From Trichosphaerium sp. ATCC 40318 (lineage: Eukaryota > Protista > Tubulinea), in NCBI GenBank assembly GCA_038496445.1, contig JALMLS010000027.1, forward strand, positions 124,001 to 188,000: DNA of 64,000 nt, read 5' to 3'. Position numbers and translations under genes: made by a program. The notes beneath the pieces were generated by a model, which searched no databases, was not told the origin of the DNA, and saw nothing but the letters and a program-made list of their open reading frames with translations. This document shows, piece after piece, positions 1-10,525 of the stretch (positions are counted from its first letter, which is position 1; each line of letters starts with the position of its first letter).

Positions 1-320
1 TTCTGATCGTTGCTCAGCTAATGCAATGCAAGGAAAGCGATAAAATACAGAGTAAAGTTGAAACAAATATTGACAGAACTTGCAAGAGTAAGAAGCAAGA
101 GATTGTTACTTAGCACAATAGTGAATAATTGCAATTCACTAATTGTTCTTACATTTTTGTGAAAGAGTGTCACCAAAGTACTAGAACCAAAAGGCAAGCG
201 ATGGGTAAGTGTGTAAAAGCTTCAAGTAACTTTAAGATAATTTTTGTTTTTTTGCTTTTATTTGAAAAAGTGTTCAAAAACTTAACGTGTTTGTAAGAAA
301 ACGTTGCAAACAGGTTGACA

Positions 321-3300
321 ATGGCAGAGCAGGATAAATTAGCAGCATTTGTATTCACTATCCATGACAATAAAGCAACACCACTCTGTGAAGCCTTCAA
401 CGTTTCAAGTGTAAATTTTTTTTCCACAAATAGCGTAAAGGAGTCCCTGCGATTCTTTGGTAATGATTCCAGGCGTAAACTAAATTCTTAACGATATATT
501 TAGCAAAAACAGTTGCTGATCGTCTAACAACCAAACCAGATCAACACAAAACAACACTGACACATGAAGGCTATTTTATTAATGTTCTAGTGTCATCAGG
601 GCTTATACTCATTCTGGTAACCAAAAATGGACTAACACGCTTGGATTTTGGGTGCTTAAGTAAAATTGAACAGGCAGTGAAAACATCGTACGGTGTTACG
701 CGTAACACATGAGTCTAATTTTCATGACACTATCCAGCGGATACAAAAGTGATCCTACGCAACCCATGGCACAACTGGAGTCCTCTTTGACAGCTATTCT
801 TACGATGTCGGACGCAGCAGATGATAAAATTACAAAGGTAAACTTCGTTTTTCTTCAATCTGTTTTTTTGCTTGGCACGTGATATTTTGTACTTTTAAAC
901 AACTAAGTGTGCCCTGGACACTATTTTCAAGAAATAATCGTCTAAGTGATGGAATATCTTGTTCTTTGTCATGAAGAAAACTAACTACTTCAAGCTGCAA
1001 CAACAGATTGACTCAAATAAGGAGATATTAATTCAGAACATTGATTCAGTTCTTGAAAGAGGAGAACGTATCGACAACCTTGTATGTCTTGCGCTGTTTT
1101 TTTAGTTTCATCCTTGTTTTACCGCGTATGAGACACGTGTAACATCATTGTAGGTGTGTCAAAGCGCGGACTTGAGTGTTTCAGCGAAGTCTTTTTATAA
1201 GAAATCTTCAAGCTTGAATTCCATTGGATTAGGCTTTTCTGGGTTTAATTGGGGATCTTCTACACCTAATATTAACGCACTTCTACCTGGTGTTGCCAAT
1301 ATAGATGGTAGCGTATTCGCACAGGAAAAATCAGCAAACCAAGATGCTGTAGATGGACTCATTACAGAGGTATACTTCCAATGTAGAATCTGTTGTTAAC
1401 CGATGATGTAGGGAGGTGATGTTGTTCGTGTAAAGGAAGTTAAAGTAGATGCGAATGTATTGGATATGGCTTCTTCAGTAAACGTCACACAAACTTACAT
1501 TAATCAATATGACACAGCCATAGAGACAAAGTATGTTTTGTTGGGTTTTTTTTGTAAGTACTTCATGTTTATATTCGCTAGATTTTCGTTCCCTCTTAAT
1601 GCTCTCGCTGCTGTATGTAAATTTACAGCAACGATCGATGGCCACGATATTGTCGGTGTTGTTCAAACTAAAGAGGAAGCAGAGGAGACTTATGATGATG
1701 CTCTTGCTGAAGGAAGAACAGCAGCTTTGATGCAAGAAGGTAAAAAAAACTTCACTCGAGAATCTTACATTTCTAATTGTTCTTTTAGAGGAGCCTGATG
1801 TTTTTGTCACATCTCTTGGCAATATACCACCTGGTGCTGAGGTTATTATAAAGATCACATATGTATCAGAGTTAGAGGTTGATGGAAAGGACATTAAATT
1901 CGTTCTACCTACAAGTGTAGCGCCAAGATATGCTCCTCCGGCTGATTTACAAACTCAGACATTGCCAAGTATTTCGAATGTTTTCTTTTCTATTGGCCTT
2001 GAGATGTCATGTGATATCACTGGAGTGAAGTGTTCTGATTACACAATCGATAGCACTCTTGAAGGCACAAAGGGATTAGTGGTGATGGATGGGCAAAAAG
2101 AGGAAAACCGAGTTGTTCTTTTGAACAAGAAAACGGACTTCGCTCTACAAGTTAGCCTTGCTGAACCGAATCAGGTATTGTATACGCTCGAACTAAAATT
2201 GATAATTAATATTTTATAGCCTAGAGTATGGTTAGAACATGATAAGGAGCATAAATCTATCGCTGTAATGGCGTCATTCTATCCAGATTTAGAAGTTGAA
2301 GAAATTGTATGTTTTTAAACCTTTATTATTATTATTTGTATAACGCTTTAAAGGTTAACGAAGTCGTTATTGTGATTGACTGTAGTGGATCAATGTCAGG
2401 ATCTCGTATTAATAGCGCAAGACAAGCCCTAAAAGAGTTACTCGACACAATCGTAAGAGATAAATCAAAACCACTTTTTTTCTTACTTCTTACTTATTTT
2501 ATTTTAACAGCCTAGCACGTGCTTCGTAAATGTATGTAGATTTGGGTCATCACATAAGTTATTATTCAGAAATAGTCAGCCTTGTAATGAGAAAACAAAG
2601 AAAGCAATTCGCGAACTACAAGTTGAAGCCGATCTTGGAGGAACAGAGCTACTAAAACCTTTGCATGCTATTCTTTCTTCAAAGGCTAAATACCCAAGAC
2701 AAGTATTCGTGATGACGGATGGAGAAGTATCCAATACTGATCAGATAATAAGATATGTTAGAGCTAAGAAGGGTAAGAGATTTGTTGTTAACGAAGATAT
2801 TTTGTGTCAAAAAAAGTGAAGCAGGCGTTTGTTTACCATTCTGTTTGTAGGGTCTACAAGGATTTTTTCTTTTGGTATTGGTAGTGGATGTTCAAAGGAG
2901 CTTGTATCAGGAATAGCACGTGCTGGTAATGGTAAAGCAGAGTATATATCTGATAATTACGCTTTAAAGCAAGTTGTCGTTCGTCAAGTCAAGTTAGCTG
3001 TAGCACCAGCACTTATAGACGTACGTTTCATTCTTCCCTTTTTTTTTAAACCAACAGTTCACTCCTTAGTAAATATTTGCCTTATGAAAAGCAAACAAAA
3101 CCCAAACCTACATGTTTTTATTTGTTCATCGAATTATTTCGTCTGTATTCGTGTGTTGCTTTTAACAAAGTTATTGTAGATGAATATGGACTGGGGAGCT
3201 ATTAAACCTGATCAACAGTCACCTCATGTTATACCGTCCTTGTTTAGTGGTTCTAGACAAATAGTTTATGCTGTGATGCCAGATACTGTAAAGTTTGATG

Positions 3301-3823
3301 AAACACAAGTTGTTTTATCTGTTATGTGCAATGGTAAGGAGAATCAATTTGCAATTAAAGCGAGTATGAGCGATATAAGAGAAGACAAAATGGTACATAC
3401 GCTTGCAGTTAAGAATATGATCACAGAGTTGCTTGAAGGCACGTTTCTTTTTCTTTTTTTTTTGTTTGTTTGTCAAATTGTTCGTTTGATTTCTTGCTGA
3501 GTTCGAACTTTGTGCTTATGAGGGTTTTAGGGGCTTCTAGATTTCATGAAGAGTCTGGAGCTTTGATGGCGCAGTACAAGACTGCAGATAAGGACTTTAT
3601 TAAGCACCGTGTTGAGAAGTTAGGAGTTATGTACCAATTGGCTTCAAAGCACACCAGCTTTGTTGCTGTAGATACTAGAGAAGGTACTTCAACGCAGACT
3701 GAAATGGTTCAAGGGAAATTAGCAGGCGATAAAAAAATGCCTGTGACGACTTGGGTACAGCTAGGAGATAATGAACCAGTGTCGTGGCTGGGTAGAATCA
3801 AGGGCATTTTCTTTAGAAATTAG
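321..3823 (+). CDS. Ykt6-like longin + R-SNARE fused to VIT and vWA domains (VWA5A-like), multi-exon
   Basis: First introns: 460-503, 688-737, 838-994, 1082-1153, 1370-1411, all phase-consistent. Longin-like part: NVSSVNFFSTNSVKESLRFFAKTVADR. R-SNARE: DKITKLQQQIDSNKEILIQNIDSVLERGERIDNLVCQSADLSVSAKSFYKK. VIT: VTQTYIN..FSFPLNALAAVCKFTATIDG..GNIPPG. vWA MIDAS: VIDCSGSM..LGGTEL..VMTDGEV..FSFGIG. Stop at 3823. Confidence 0.88.
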
Positions 3824-3979
3824 TAAATGAAATTAATAAATAGTTGTTAGCTTAATTAAAACCGTTCAAAGCTTTGTATTATTGTAAATAGTGCAAAGCA
3901 TATACGTTACATATTGGAAGGTCAATACAAAGCAAAACAAAAGCGAACCAATGACATGTAAGCAAGTGAAGTCATGTTT

Positions 3980-5720
3980 TTACCATACACGTGGTGCAGT
4001 TTTCCATTCGTCAACAATACACCCTTCATCCATAATGTAGTACCTACGTATTCGTAAGTATAACAAAAGAGATATAAAGGTTTATTATAACGTACTTGCT
4101 GTAACATGCCGCAGTAAGGCAAGAATGATTTGGTGTAATCCGTAAAAGAGTACCAATAGGATATTTTTCCTTTTTTTTCTTGTTATTTAAACAACTACAT
4201 TATAAAGAAACGTACAACGTCAAGTTTACCATCAACTCCTTCTACAATACCTACTTCTTGACTACACATAATGATAAGCATAGTCAAAACAAATATATGA
4301 ACAAGAGCTTGGTACCTTATGCTTACAATCTTAAGGTTTGGATGATCTTGGATTACTCCCCATTGCTTGTATTCCAAGTGCGAAGGACCAAGGTCTTTGG
4401 ATAAACCCAAAGCACCAGCATCTATAAGAAGTCTTGGATTATCTCCACGATATCTTGACACAACTCTAGCTAGCACAAAACATGCGCAAGCTTCCATTTC
4501 GCAACTTCCAATTTTAGCTTGTGTTACATCCATAAAAGCGTAGTTTCCTGAAAAAAGGTCACGTGATTTCAATTTTTAGTTTGTTTGAGGGCGCACCAGG
4601 GTGCATTTCATTTATTCCTTTGAGTGAAGCATCACTTGAGCATGTTGGTGTAGAGCCAATAGCAATGGCTTCTACTTTAAGACCAGCTGCGATGAGCTTG
4701 TCTTTAAAACTTGCTGTGACCTTAACTTCATCCTCAGCGACTGATTTAATCTCTTCTCTATTACCTCCATGATAAGAGTGACCAGCGTGACAATATACGC
4801 CTACCTTTGAGATTGTAAGTGTCGTACATTGAGTGAGTTTCAGTTGAGTACTAGAGTTGTAGATGGTCCTTCTGCTATCTCCTTTGCGAAGTGCACTGCT
4901 TCGTCACCTATTATCAATTACCACACAGTCAATGTGGAGAGAATCCTACCAGATGTATCAATCCCTGTGCGGTGGTATCCTGGGTCAATATCTAAGTACA
5001 AATGCAAGGTTGTCTTTTCTTCTTCTGCTACTTTTTTAGCAATTTCGAAACCTTCCCTTTTTTTCCATTAATTCAAATTTTTCTCGATTGGTTACTCTTT
5101 AATTGTACCTTGAGTCAACTAGAAAGCAAACCCTACGTATATTCTTTGCGTATTGGAGTAGTCTTTTACATTTGGAAGGCACTGAAGAGTAGTTAATGCG
5201 TATGTAAAAAAAAACTACGTACCAATTGGCACAGCGTATAGAACGTCCTGAAAACCTGCGTCAATGAAGAATTCTGCTTCGCCAAGCGTAGAGACTACAA
5301 TACAAGAGCGTTCCTATTTGACAGTTGTCAGTGAGAAAAGTAGAATCGTAATGTAACGTTATACGCACTAAAAAGTCCTTCGTTGTTGCGTTTTTAATGT
5401 CGTTCCCGTATAATTGGTACAATGCGCCTTCAATTGTTTTGTGGGTCTTAATATGTGGTCTAAGCGTAACCTTGACAGCGTCAGGTACGTATATAACGGT
5501 TTTTTGTGTACATTGTATTTTTTCGCTCTATCCAGCATTTTCTGTCCGTTGGAGGCCAAAACTTTTCTATCCACCTTATTTGTAAGCTACAGTGATGTAC
5601 TAAATCAAGTACTATTAGGCTCGGTGTTGGCAAGTCATCTATTGATCTTTTAGGCGCTCCATTGCTTCCTTTCTTCAAACGTGCTATGGCTTCTTCAATT
5701 TTATCGTATGACAGGCTCAT
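3980..5720 (-). CDS. D-serine dehydratase / D-threonine aldolase family PLP enzyme (alanine-racemase fold)
   Basis: Spliced exons give LPTPSLIV, RLRPHIKTHK (PLP lysine), DIDPGYHRTG, HAGHSY, GSTPTCS, EMHPGNYAFMD, IDAGALGLSKD, PNHSC. Confidence 0.9.
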
Positions 5721-5990
5721 TGGTAGTGTCAAAAAACTGTTTGATAAAAGTGTCACTTTGACTTTTTTGACTAGAATAGACTCTTGACACCGGTCCTCTG
5801 AGGAGATCTCTATATGGCCTTTGTAGGCTACCAAGATTACTACGTATTGTGACTACCTAAGGGTAATAAGGGAGGTTCAGAATAGGCAAAGTAGTGGTAA
5901 AAAACAAAGATCAATTCACTTAATGGTTCCGGGTATTTTAAGATATCCAACAGGCAAAACAGACTTTCTACTTTAAACACGCAACAGTTG

Positions 5991-7823
5991 ATGTCTCAAA
6001 AACGAATAGCTATATTCACAACAGGTTCTAGAGGAGATGTAGAGCCTTGCGTGAGCCTTGCGTTAAAGCTGATGAGCAAAAACTTTGTGGTGCTTCTAGG
6101 TGCTTTTTCTTACGTATATTAACTCTAACAACGTATAAAGGAGCTGATCCTAACCATGAGGACTTTGTAAAGTCACGTGGGGTACCATACGTCAGTACTG
6201 GAGTAGATACGCAAAAAATCCTTGAAGAATTTAAAAGCGGAAAAGATATGAACGAAATGAAGGAAAAACTACAAAATATGTATGTCAAGGTGTCCTATGA
6301 TTCATGGAAAGCAAGCGAGGCATTCAAACCGGATGTAGTAGCTACTCACAAGGTAAGTCCGTATTTCTTGTATAACATGTGTTTATGTCGTTGTGACCCT
6401 TTCACGCAGTCAGTTTTTGCTGGGTTTGGTATTGCTGCAAAACTTGGTAAACCTTACGTACAGGTACTAAAGTCACTGGTATTTTATTGTTGTAGTAACT
6501 AGCTTGTTAGTTTTCTTTCTCTCCGTGGGATGCATCGGGATCTTATCCAACGTTTTTTGATGAGAAGGCAATGGCCGATCCATCATGTTGGTATTTTACC
6601 AAAGAGACAACACCTCAGAAACAGTTTGCAAATTTTGTTGCCCATACAGCAGCAATAGAAGGTGGTTGGTTAGGGCAATATGGTCATGTTAAAGATACTT
6701 TGAAGATGGACAATCTCCCAAAAACGTGTGCTTATTTCCTACTTAGCAAATCTAAAGTATGTCTCCTGCAAATGGATTTTTCTTATTTTTTTCTAAATCG
6801 TACTTCAAGGTGCCAGTATTGAGCGCTTGGAGCCCAAGTATCCTCAACCCACCAGATTTTAAGGCACCTCATTCTAATGTCACTGGGTACTGGTTTATGG
6901 ACACTGTGAGAAAGTCTTCATGGGAACCACCTAAAGTACAAACATTTAGTTGTACTTATTGTTTACTTTTTTTCAAAGACTTTGACTGATTTTCTTGCTT
7001 CCGGTGACAAACCTGTCTATATCGGTTTTGGTAGTATGTTTGCAGATAATCCAGATAAAGTTCGTGAGAGTATAATGGGTGTAATAAAAAACACTAAACA
7101 ACGCTTTGTTCTTCTTGGTGGATGGGCAAAAATATTTGGAGTAAGTCGGAAGTTCAATACACTCAGAGTAACAATTCTCTAGGAGAAGGACTTAAGCGAT
7201 GATGTCTTTGTGATTAATGAAGTACCTCATAGTTGGTTATTACCAAAAATGAAAGCAGCAGTAATTCACGGAGGTGCAGGAACTACTGGAGCTTGTAAGT
7301 GAAAAAAGAAAGAAAAAACCCCGATATCTAACTTTCTCAAGGTCTTCGTGCTGGTATCCCAACGATTATCGTTGCTCATATTTCTGATCAACCATGGTGG
7401 GGAAACCTGTTATATCATCAAGGCGTAGGAACATCACAAATGCATGTCAAGGACATAAGTACTGAAAATCTCACTGCAGCAGTAACAGAAGCCATATCAA
7501 ATAAATCAATGATAGAAAAAGCAAAAGCTATTGGTACTACTTTACTGCACTTTGTTGTTAACAAGTTAGTTGTATCTTTATTAAATGTTGTTACAGGCGA
7601 AAGTATTGCAAAGGAAGATGGACTTGAGCAGGCTGCCAAAATTATTCAACGCGCTATCGATGATAATTGTGTTCCTTGTTTCGAGATGGATAGCCCTCCT
7701 TGGTTAAAACGAGACCCTCCAATGCCATCAACAGAGGAAGATTTCTTATGGATGTATGAGAACAATATGCATCAATATGAACCTGAGATAGTTAAAAAGC
7801 ACTTTCAGGACACTAAAAAATAA
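5991..7823 (+). CDS. Sterol 3-beta-glucosyltransferase-like glycosyltransferase (GT1, UGT80/Atg26 catalytic domain only)
   Basis: IAIFTTGSRGDVEP, WSPSIL, VTGYWF, PVYIGFGSM, VPHSWLLPKMKAAVIHGGAGTT, LRAGIPTI, DQPWWG. Confidence 0.92.
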
Positions 7824-8639
7824 ACTGCATCGAAAAGTAACTCACGTGAAAAGAAACTTGGATATTGAACCCACCAGTAATATAGTTCTTCTAACTACTA
7901 GAAATACTTTACAAATACTCTATAGACAATGTACTAGTAACAAGGATTTGGAAACAGCATCGTTTTGTTTCACGTGATTTTCTCAAAACAGCGACGACTT
8001 GCAACCTACAGTATTCAAAAACTGTTCTTGTAATCTCAAACGTATTCATAGCCACTTTAAAGAATTCGTTCATAGTTTTATTATTAAGGTAGCGCTAATA
8101 ACGTTGTCAAATAGCGTTATCTTCTAAGTACAAACAGCGGGTAAATCTATTGTGCGACTTTTTAAAGTCACTTACTATGGCTCTGAGTTATCCGCTGGCG
8201 CGGAAACCACCTGAGGTAGACAACGCTAATGGTATAAGATACAGAAAACTACTCTGATGTTTCGGGGTTATCGCGCCGCATGAACAAAAATACCGAGGAA
8301 AACCTTTTTTCCCAATACTTGTCATGTCAACTTTACAAAATCTAATTAATATGTTTTTAAGCGTACTTTTGACAAAGTGGACGATATTTTCTCCCACGGA
8401 ACAACAGATTTGAAACAATGTCCGGCGAGTTTAACTGTCAAATTCCATATTGTCTCGGGATTGGTTGGCCATAACACCCATTCAGTAAGATATTTGGGGC
8501 CTATAAAACAAAACTAGCCACTCCACCAAATTCTCCACCGCTTTTGGTTTTTTTTTATGATTTATTTTACGACAAAAGGTCGTTGCATCACGTTGTGGGT
8601 AACAATAGACGGGTATAAACCTCTAGCGAGTGTACATTA

Positions 8640-9561
8640 ATGGCGTGCATCAAAAAACGTGTGTGCAGACGGAGAAGATGCTCTAAATCGGATAGTAGGC
8701 AATCAGAGCTCGAGTACGTCAAATATAGATCAACAAAACAAATATTTGTTACATTCTCTCTATTATCCTTTTTATCGCTTCTCCTACACCGCTTACGCCC
8801 AAATTTACTACTGCCTTGTTTTACAATTCTCTTTATCAAGCGTTTCGCTACAACGTTTAGAATTCACAAATTATCATTCCCAACCGCTTCTAATAGCTCC
8901 TATTAACTTCCGTATAGTTTTACGATGTTTCCAAAAGAATTACAGTGGCTTATCTACAACTCCTGTAAAGAGTTGTACATCAAGTGGCCTCTAATATGTA
9001 AAGCTACAGCATGTAGATCTCGATTTAATTGTTCACTACAAAAACATGGAGCGTGGGTTTGTTGGAACAAGAAGTGTCAGAAATACAAGCTACAGCACTT
9101 TCGTAATGGTAAACCAGAAGGTAAATACATAAGATGGCATCAAAATAGTTGTATAGAGGTGATATGTTGGTACAAAAATGGTCTTCTTCATGGTGAGTAT
9201 AAAGCATGGTATCAAAATGGAAAACCTGCTGAACATTGTTTGTATAAATATGGAAAGGTTGATGGTACTTATAAGAGATGGTTTGATAATGGTCAGTTGA
9301 ACCTTGCTTGTCAGTTCAAGAAAGGGAAATGTAATAATCAAAAGAAAGAAAAATGTAGTAAAGAAAAACAATGTCAAGCTGAAACAAGGGTTTTAAATGA
9401 ACTTACTAAAAGCCTAGAATTCTTCACGTGTGAAGACCTACAGGTACAGTCCCGACGTTTTTTTAAATTCTCGTTTTATAACAACAAACACTTCTTCTTC
9501 TTATGGTAGTCTCATGTTTGCTTAGGAGCTAGTACGAGGGGACTGTGCGAATAGATTGTAA
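8640..9561 (+). CDS. F-box-like + MORN-variant (YwqK-like) repeat protein
   Basis: Introns ~8714-8917 and ~9444-9525. F-box-like segment FPKELQWLIY..WPLICK, then ~24-aa repeats FRNGKPEGKYIRWHQN, YKNGLLHGEYKAWYQNGK, YKYGKVDGTYKRWFDNGQ. TATAAAA at 8502. Confidence 0.75.
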
Positions 9562-9760: not shown

Positions 9761-10525
9761 TCAATTAATAGCTCCAAATACATTGATATGTTTTACATGT
9801 TCAAGCTTGACCAATTGAGCCAAACTGGTCGCTGTAATAGCATCACAATTGTCTAATAGTAAGCGTCTGACATTTGTTAATGATTTGATTCCATTATCTG
9901 TCAATGATAGTCCATCATAGATATGAACCGTATGCACATTTGCAAGGTGTTTTAGCCAGCTATCTTGAGGATCATCAACCATAATTGTATGTACACATGC
10001 GAGTGCCTTCAGCCAATCACCTGTAACACCTGGGCAACCACAAATATTAACTGTGTGGACATTCTTGAGAGCTTTTATACCATTAATGGTAATACGCTTA
10101 CAACCTCTAAGTGTAATTTTGTGCACGTGTTTAAGAGCATTTAATGAAACATCTGTAATGTTTGTTTTGGTCAAGTTAATGTTGTAAATCCTGTTTTTCC
10201 CTCTTTTTACCAATTCAAGGATTCTGCTATCTTTTATTAATGTATGAGAAAGATCTATAGTATGAACACCAGATAGGCAAGCTATATTTCTCTTTGACAG
10301 CTTTAGATGCGTATGCCAATTGAAACAAACGATTTTAGTGTTTTTTAATAACGGATTACGTCTTAGCACCAAGCAATCTGACGATTTCAGTAATTGTATT
10401 GTTCCAAGACCGACATTGCGCCGTATGATGTTTAGAAATAAGTGACATACTGTAGAAGTTGTAATACGCTGTTTTCTGTTTAAATAACGTAATATATGCG
10501 TTAGTATCTCTGGTAACGTTCTCAA
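9761..10525 (-). CDS. F-box + leucine-rich repeat protein; intronless body, start codon apparently displaced to 12613
   Basis: F-box LPEILTHILRYL..STVCHLF. LRRs VHTIDLSHTLIKD, VHKITLRGCKRIT, VHTVNICGCPGVT, VRRLLLDNCDAIT. No in-frame ATG next to the ORF. Confidence 0.8.
   Translation of the reverse strand: MRTLPEILTHILRYLNRKQRITTSTVCHLFLNIIRRNVGLGTIQLLKSSDCLVLRRNPLLKNTKIVCFNWHTHLKLSKRNIACLSGVHTIDLSHTLIKDSRILELVKRGKNRIYNINLTKTNITDVSLNALKHVHKITLRGCKRITINGIKALKNVHTVNICGCPGVTGDWLKALACVHTIMVDDPQDSWLKHLANVHTVHIYDGLSLTDNGIKSLTNVRRLLLDNCDAITATSLAQLVKLEHVKHINVFGAIN

Follow-up and report, generated by a model that had tools for sequence, protein, structure and literature searches.

A Ykt6-type SNARE module joined to a VIT-vWA body at the place of its lipid anchor in the amoeba Trichosphaerium

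The R-SNARE Ykt6 depends on cysteines that carry farnesyl and palmitoyl (or geranylgeranyl) groups, and mutants of these lipid sites fail to rescue its loss in flies; it can also be a regulatory, non-fusogenic SNARE that is displaced by Vamp7 (PMC5937789). Intracellular proteins with a VIT and a vWA domain are thought to work via protein-protein contacts, and Vwa1 of Dictyostelium has an F-box protein as its partner (PMC10539598). Here we describe a gene that joins a module of the first kind to a body of the second. It lies at 321-3823 of a 64,000-nt window from Trichosphaerium sp. ATCC 40318 (assembly GCA_038496445.1, contig JALMLS010000027.1, positions 124,001 to 188,000 of the forward strand; all coordinates below are those of the window) and encodes a protein of 852 aa, residues 1-193 of which form a Ykt6-type longin and R-SNARE module. 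Our preferred reading, to which we assign a probability of roughly 0.55, is that this is a real, expressed and selectively maintained fusion gene whose product is a cytosolic, non-fusogenic, partner-capturing adaptor.

Compared to Ykt6 (3kyq, 6j74), the protein is collinear in its longin domain and R-SNARE motif over residues 10-193, has the zero-layer arginine, the FYK...NS ending and, in layers -4 and -2, the polar residues, and shares the absence of a transmembrane domain. It differs from Ykt6 in having no CCAIM-type motif, running on instead through a linker to a VIT-vWA body of 615 residues, and the two are only ~30% identical. With VWA5A (BCSC-1) and Dictyostelium Vwa1 it has in common the order of VIT, hybrid, vWA with a MIDAS (metal-ion-dependent adhesion site) and helical bundle, as well as the lack of a signal peptide (PMC10539598). 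Those proteins begin about 10 residues before VIT, whereas 237 residues of Ykt6 module and linker stand ahead of it here, and the C-terminal domain of ~100 residues described for them is absent. PARP4 (vault PARP, with the order BRCT-PARP-VIT-vWA) likewise carries another functional module N-terminal to VIT-vWA, and many PARP4-like proteins are among the nearest matches; the N-terminal partner is an enzyme in PARP4 and a SNARE here.

An earlier note on this DNA, made from the sequence alone, held that the N-terminus follows Ykt6 up to NS and that the CCAAX anchor is missing from there on. Both statements are borne out. In a comparison with all solved structures, residues 10-193 align with residues 8-194 of rat Ykt6 (57.7 bits, E 1.3e-14), an alignment that runs to the NS ahead of CCAIM and no further; the score of human Ykt6 is similar. 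Ykt6 is ahead of the next SNARE type by 17 bits (VAMP7 at 40.9 and Sec22b at 16.6 bits), leaving a VAMP7 or Sec22 type less supported. Among longin structures, residues 10-101 match those of yeast Ykt6 (3bw6 and 1h8m), and the ESM Atlas model of residues 1-196 reaches a TM-score of 0.84 against a YKT6 cluster; a feature search of the same resource ranked generic longin SNAREs first. The longin exon alone and the junction exon alone found no match among the solved structures. All 16 SNARE layers are filled (I L I N L N V R I L S L A F S L), and their polar/apolar pattern is Ykt6-like. A VAMP7-like protein, P0151, shares an identical stretch of 15 residues in the SNARE motif and nothing in the longin part. 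As a longin SNARE for comparison, the word-based protein searches yielded a single VAMP7-like protein.

Pfam profiles agree with this assignment. On P0001, the database copy of the protein introduced below, Synaptobrevin covers residues 136-192 (51.7 bits) and Longin covers residues 47-103 (23.2 bits, with the cut-off at 26.2), while exon 2 alone gives 25 bits for Longin. The four domains named in the earlier note, Longin (below its cut-off), Synaptobrevin, VIT and VWA_3, were all scored on P0001, and an exon-by-exon search also found Longin, Synaptobrevin, VIT and VWA.

Where Ykt6 has its double-cysteine CCAAX motif, the NS of this protein is followed by IGLGF and then by a run rich in G/S/N/A. 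Cysteine is absent between residues 173 and 293, as is a CAAX box after the SNARE motif. A scan for C-x-x-x-stop in all forward frames of 1-8000, aimed at a CAAX-type alternative exon, returned chance matches only, without a usable splice site. No transmembrane segment follows the SNARE motif either; the highest 19-residue hydropathy of the protein is 1.72 and falls inside the longin sheet, compared to 3.29 for the transmembrane segment of P0151. Neither a lipidation site nor a transmembrane segment thus stands after the SNARE motif. At the other end of the protein, the C-terminal tail is basic and hydrophobic in composition. Its description as amphipathic did not hold up: 31% of shuffles of its own residues reach its hydrophobic moment, so that its amphipathicity is not above chance, and the tail is unstructured in the AlphaFold2 (AF2) model. 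A C-terminal amphipathic anchor was rejected on the hydrophobic moment.

To obtain the gene model, the three forward frames of 1-4500 were translated and spliced by hand, giving 14 exons whose 852 codons read without a break from ATG 321 to TAG 3821-3823. The 13 introns are short (42-159 nt) and AT-rich, and 12 of them are bounded by GT..AG. Two public runs from separate studies, here called X1 (2015) and X2 (2024), were taken as RNA since their contigs skip exactly these introns; X2 is labelled as a different organism from that of the window. Spliced contigs of the two runs bear out all 13 introns, and the skip of the unusual intron 13 is visible both in X1/X2 contig pieces (3180-3436 and 3529-3828) and in L004, a 2,614-nt JGI cDNA contig. 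By blastn, L004 is collinear with 314-3871 of the window, every intron gone, and it encodes P0171, a member of the 90% cluster of P0001. P0001 itself is an MMETSP open reading frame of 852 aa, labelled 'type:complete', that differs from our model at three residues (A9V, T91P and D738N); a representative search with exon 8 as the query returned it with 100% identity at residues 336-463. The continuous frame first obtained by hand splicing is therefore matched by P0001 and L004, which also span the whole gene. The MMETSP and JGI records and X1 were possibly built on the same reads, and X2 is independent of them.

The join between the two halves does not depend on a splice. Exon 5 holds the end of the SNARE motif (..SAKSFYKKSSSLNS), the linker and the first VIT residues, GLITE, with no stop codon, placing the fusion inside a single exon as had been proposed. 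Spliced contigs and L004 cross this exon: record 2 of X1 (2,093 nt) runs unbroken from 39 nt of exon 4 via exon 5 to 3828, and exons 3, 4 and 5 are joined in one X2 contig. The alternative of two adjacent genes, or of a read-through artefact, was ruled out by the lack of an intervening stop between the modules, the intra-exonic junction and the single cDNA contig over 314-3871. The window contains no second copy of the gene. AF2 gives residues 190-238 a predicted local distance difference test score (pLDDT) of 24-30, and the linker is predicted to be disordered or flexible.

Read depth in X1 is 6.2 for the contig of exons 1-4 and 36.9 for the contig of exons 4-14; the two do not overlap, and the break falls at 1035-1043 in exon 4. 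This step may reflect 3′ bias or a commoner, 5′-shortened transcript. Depth in X2 is even across the gene, without the step in exon 4.

Between X2 and the window we counted nine synonymous sites (in the SNARE end at 1213, in the linker at 1240 and in the body) and one replaced codon, Y185S. Because synonymous changes prevail in this way, the gene appears to be under purifying selection and maintained. T91P is present in both RNA runs. At position 635, the underlying site in the longin domain, the window has A (Thr91), and both RNA runs, the MMETSP open reading frame and the JGI cDNA have C (Pro91); the difference is either an allele or an assembly error.

The remainder of the protein is, to judge from its alignments and predicted fold, a VIT-vWA body of VWA5A/ITIH type whose MIDAS metal site is complete. 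D501, S503, S505, T570 and D595 stand on near-invariant columns of alignment A1 (45 sequences), so the MIDAS is intact, as first described. AF2, run with an alignment of 45 sequences, modeled residues 240-810 with pLDDT >90 and residues 813-852 with pLDDT <50. Foldseek ranked highest the ITIH1 heavy chain (6fpy, E 2e-35) and an axonemal VIT-vWA protein of a trypanosome, and residues 234-850 match the structure of a VWA5A-like cluster in the ESM Atlas. In trees, the body sits among eukaryotic VWA5A-like and PARP4-like sequences, apart from the bacterial group. The N-terminal GL of the relatives corresponds in the alignment to GL 238-239 of this protein; a median of ~11 residues precedes it in them, against 237 here. 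As the N-terminus is the Ykt6 module, we took the protein, by inspection and with no predictor, to have no signal peptide, in keeping with the intracellular VWA5A-like proteins.

We searched for the same architecture elsewhere with the N-terminal region (the targets being proteins 469-1491 aa long), the N-terminal part alone and the full length, and found no second protein with Synaptobrevin or Longin together with VIT; these protein searches were word-based and of limited sensitivity, so distant cases could escape. The combination is absent among the 150 nearest VIT relatives and was not found in IMG/VR, the JGI metagenomes or the ESM Atlas clusters. Literature searches that paired Ykt6 with von Willebrand or VWA returned unrelated papers only, and the paper on the Trichosphaerium genome contains no mention of SNARE or VWA. 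The view that a longin-SNARE-VIT-vWA protein is undescribed stands for the databases and papers searched, and we found the combination of a Ykt6-type SNARE with VIT-vWA in no organism other than this one.

A protein of the same design does occur in Dermamoeba algensis (P0026, also P0172; EP01097_P007184, an unpublished EukProt product of that species' transcriptome). It too has 852 aa, with ~240 extra N-terminal residues, and consists of a whole housekeeping protein to its C-terminus, a G/S-rich linker and VIT-vWA, with a degenerate Ran in the place of the SNARE. Residues 152-216 match Ran 151-215 (54 bits), acidic tail included, and there is a weak alignment of residues 6-58 to Ran 12-63; no P-loop is left, and Pfam no longer scores a Ras-type domain. 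Both N-terminal modules were removed before trees were built, and the trimmed bodies of P0026 and the Trichosphaerium protein came out as sisters in a quick tree of 51 rows (Shimodaira-Hasegawa-like approximate likelihood ratio test, SH-aLRT, 98) and in a careful tree of 37 rows (ultrafast bootstrap 98, SH-aLRT 97). No likeness was detected between the linkers of the two proteins.

As this sister shares the design but bears a Ran whose P-loop is dead, the comparison suggests a small amoebozoan family in which the VIT-vWA body would stay constant and the N-terminal part would vary, being in each case a copy of some housekeeping transport protein, one that may bind but be inactive. Three dictyostelid proteins, P0023 and P0034 of Cavenderia fasciculata and P0073 of Synstelium polycarpum, are PARP4-like, 2,300-2,500 aa long, and have a 14-3-3 domain after vWA, and such dictyostelid proteins stand high among the matches; two of the three also contain a stretch like the acidic tail of ribosomal protein P. 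One ESM Atlas cluster joins ubiquitin to VIT-vWA.

Under our preferred reading, a Ykt6-derived longin/R-SNARE module lost its C-terminal double-cysteine lipid anchor, and its product would be soluble and cytosolic. Because no anchor lies next to the SNARE motif, the protein would be unable to drive fusion. It may still bind the partners of Ykt6, both the Q-SNARE acceptor complexes and those that contact the longin domain. The Ykt6 copy would then supply specificity and the VIT-vWA body the output, via metal-dependent protein-protein contacts, so that the body would be placed at Ykt6-dependent fusion sites or those sites would be blocked. Such a protein could occupy Q-SNARE complexes in the manner of tomosyn, bring them to a ubiquitin ligase, or bait pathogen factors. 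Tomosyn and amisyn are expected to form non-fusogenic complexes with Q-SNAREs, and the protein described here would resemble them, in presumed function only, as a soluble, unanchorable R-SNARE motif on a large non-SNARE body; in them the SNARE motif comes after the body, toward the C-terminus, and no longin domain is present, and the bodies are not homologous. We favor this logic of binding without acting because the Ran-bearing sister likewise lost the part responsible for activity and kept the part that binds partners.

Several observations weigh against the adaptor. The Ykt6 module is divergent, with an identity to rat Ykt6 of ~30% as counted from the alignment, and its Longin score is slightly below the Pfam cut-off. 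AF2 confidence is low for residues 1-190, because the alignment holds no homologues of that part. The one replaced codon in X2, Y185S, lies in the conserved FYK of that strain. Finally, the proposed family has two members in hand, both on long branches.

The gene offers a natural, expressed Ykt6 copy in which the anchor is swapped for a metal-dependent interaction module of 600 residues, and hence a ready probe of how Ykt6 behaves in a cell once its anchor is gone. With the Ran-bearing sister alongside, it would supply a testable logic, that of a constant body with a variable partner-binding module, for the poorly understood intracellular VIT-vWA proteins such as VWA5A and PARP4.

A possible, if unlikely, alternative is that the gene encodes an integrated decoy, in which the anchor-dead Ykt6 copy baits bacterial or giant-virus factors that bind, modify or cut Ykt6, and the VIT-vWA body reports or traps them. 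The Dermamoeba sister is consistent with this, as its Ran copy has lost the P-loop and kept its C-terminal third at 54 bits, and so are the dictyostelid proteins with 14-3-3 and the Atlas cluster with ubiquitin. Three of the four amino-acid polymorphisms seen also fall in the Ykt6 module, but these counts are too small to indicate faster evolution. Moreover, the protein has no immune output domain, and a literature search gave nothing on such a system. We consider it doubtful, though conceivable, that these proteins make up an undescribed amoebozoan class of cytosolic sensors or traps, in which the VIT-vWA body presents a hub protein in inactivated form (Ykt6, Ran, possibly 14-3-3) as bait for pathogen effectors. 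Such sensors would parallel the integrated decoys of plant nucleotide-binding leucine-rich repeat receptors.

We think it improbable that the gene makes two products and switches between an anchored SNARE and the fusion. Were intron 5 retained, the frame would stop 9 codons on (..GLITE-VYFQCRICC-stop), yielding a 251-residue Ykt6-like protein with a ..CRICC tail that might be lipidated. A tail of this kind, with three cysteines and a terminal CC, is rare: 0.05% of the stop-preceding tails in the window have this combination and 0.6% have three cysteines. However, the tail was noticed post hoc, does not form a CAAX box and is separated from the SNARE motif by 58 residues, and every X1 and X2 contig as well as L004 is spliced at intron 5, although contigs cannot reveal rare isoforms.

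Even more doubtful is a working, fusogenic Ykt6 in which a protein anchor replaces the lipid, the vesicle being held by the VIT-vWA body or by the basic tail at the C-terminus. The intact SNARE layers and zero-layer arginine and the basic, hydrophobic tail are compatible with it. Against these stand ~650 residues and a disordered linker between the SNARE motif and any such anchor, which would uncouple zippering from the membrane, the chance-level amphipathicity of the tail, and more divergence from Ykt6 than would be expected of an essential orthologue. A recent chimera with no function, or two genes joined by an error of assembly or annotation, would account for an architecture seen in one organism only, but it is very improbable and already largely refuted by the agreement of the genome with three transcript assemblies, the intra-exonic junction without a stop, the nine synonymous changes against one replaced codon between strains, and the intact MIDAS and SNARE layers.

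Table 1. Features of the fusion gene, with positions in the 64,000-nt window.
Feature	Position	Strand	Basis
Coding sequence, 14 exons, 852 codons + TAG (3821-3823)	321..3823	+	Hand-spliced model; ATG 321
Exons 1-7	321-459, 504-687, 738-837, 995-1081, 1154-1369, 1412-1530, 1582-1739	+	
Exons 8-14	1789-2174, 2220-2306, 2354-2452, 2511-2772, 2851-3020, 3180-3438, 3531-3823	+	
Transcribed unit (extent of cDNA contig L004)	314..3871	+	blastn of L004 against the window; X1 and X2 spliced contigs agree
Ykt6-type longin domain (residues 1 to ~125) and start of SNARE motif, exons 1-3	321..837	+	Pfam Longin; structure alignments
R-SNARE motif (residues 136-192), exons 3-5, ending ..FYKKSSSLNS	820..1219	+	Pfam Synaptobrevin, 51.7 bits
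Zero-layer arginine R163 (AGA) in LERGE	1058..1060	+	Sequence
Exon 5, junction exon (end of the SNARE motif, linker and first residues of VIT, all in a single open frame)	1154..1369	+	X1 record 2 joins it unbroken to exons 4 and 6; covered by L004
Linker (residues 194-237, ~45 aa), G/S/N/A-rich, without Cys	1223..1354	+	Composition
VIT domain (residues 238-359), exons 5-8	1355..1862	+	Pfam VIT 250-359, 121.2 bits
Intron 5 (42 nt)	1370..1411	+	Spliced out in X1, X2 and L004
vWA domain (residues 494-643), exons 10-12	2357..2942	+	Pfam VWA_3 85.3 bits, VWA 49.3 bits; AF2 pLDDT >90
MIDAS motif D501-C-S503-G-S505	2378..2392	+	Alignment A1
Further MIDAS residues T570 and D595	2643-2645 (T570), 2718-2720 (D595)	+	Alignment A1
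Intron 13, GC..AG boundary, sole non-GT donor among 13	3439..3530	+	Frame kept by this cut only
C-terminal tail (residues 813-852) and stop codon	3701..3823	+	AF2 pLDDT <50

Downstream of the gene lies a convergent neighbor on the minus strand (~3900-5800), with a D-serine dehydratase-like domain (Pfam PF14031, 33.7 bits) and introns that read CT..AC on the forward strand, corresponding to GT..AG on the minus strand (4040-4091 and 4169-4214). The 3′ ends of the two genes are within ~100 nt of each other. Further along are two intron-free open reading frames, one with MORN_2 repeats (8925-9509, plus strand) and one with an F-box followed by repeats resembling leucine-rich repeats (9761-10525, minus strand).

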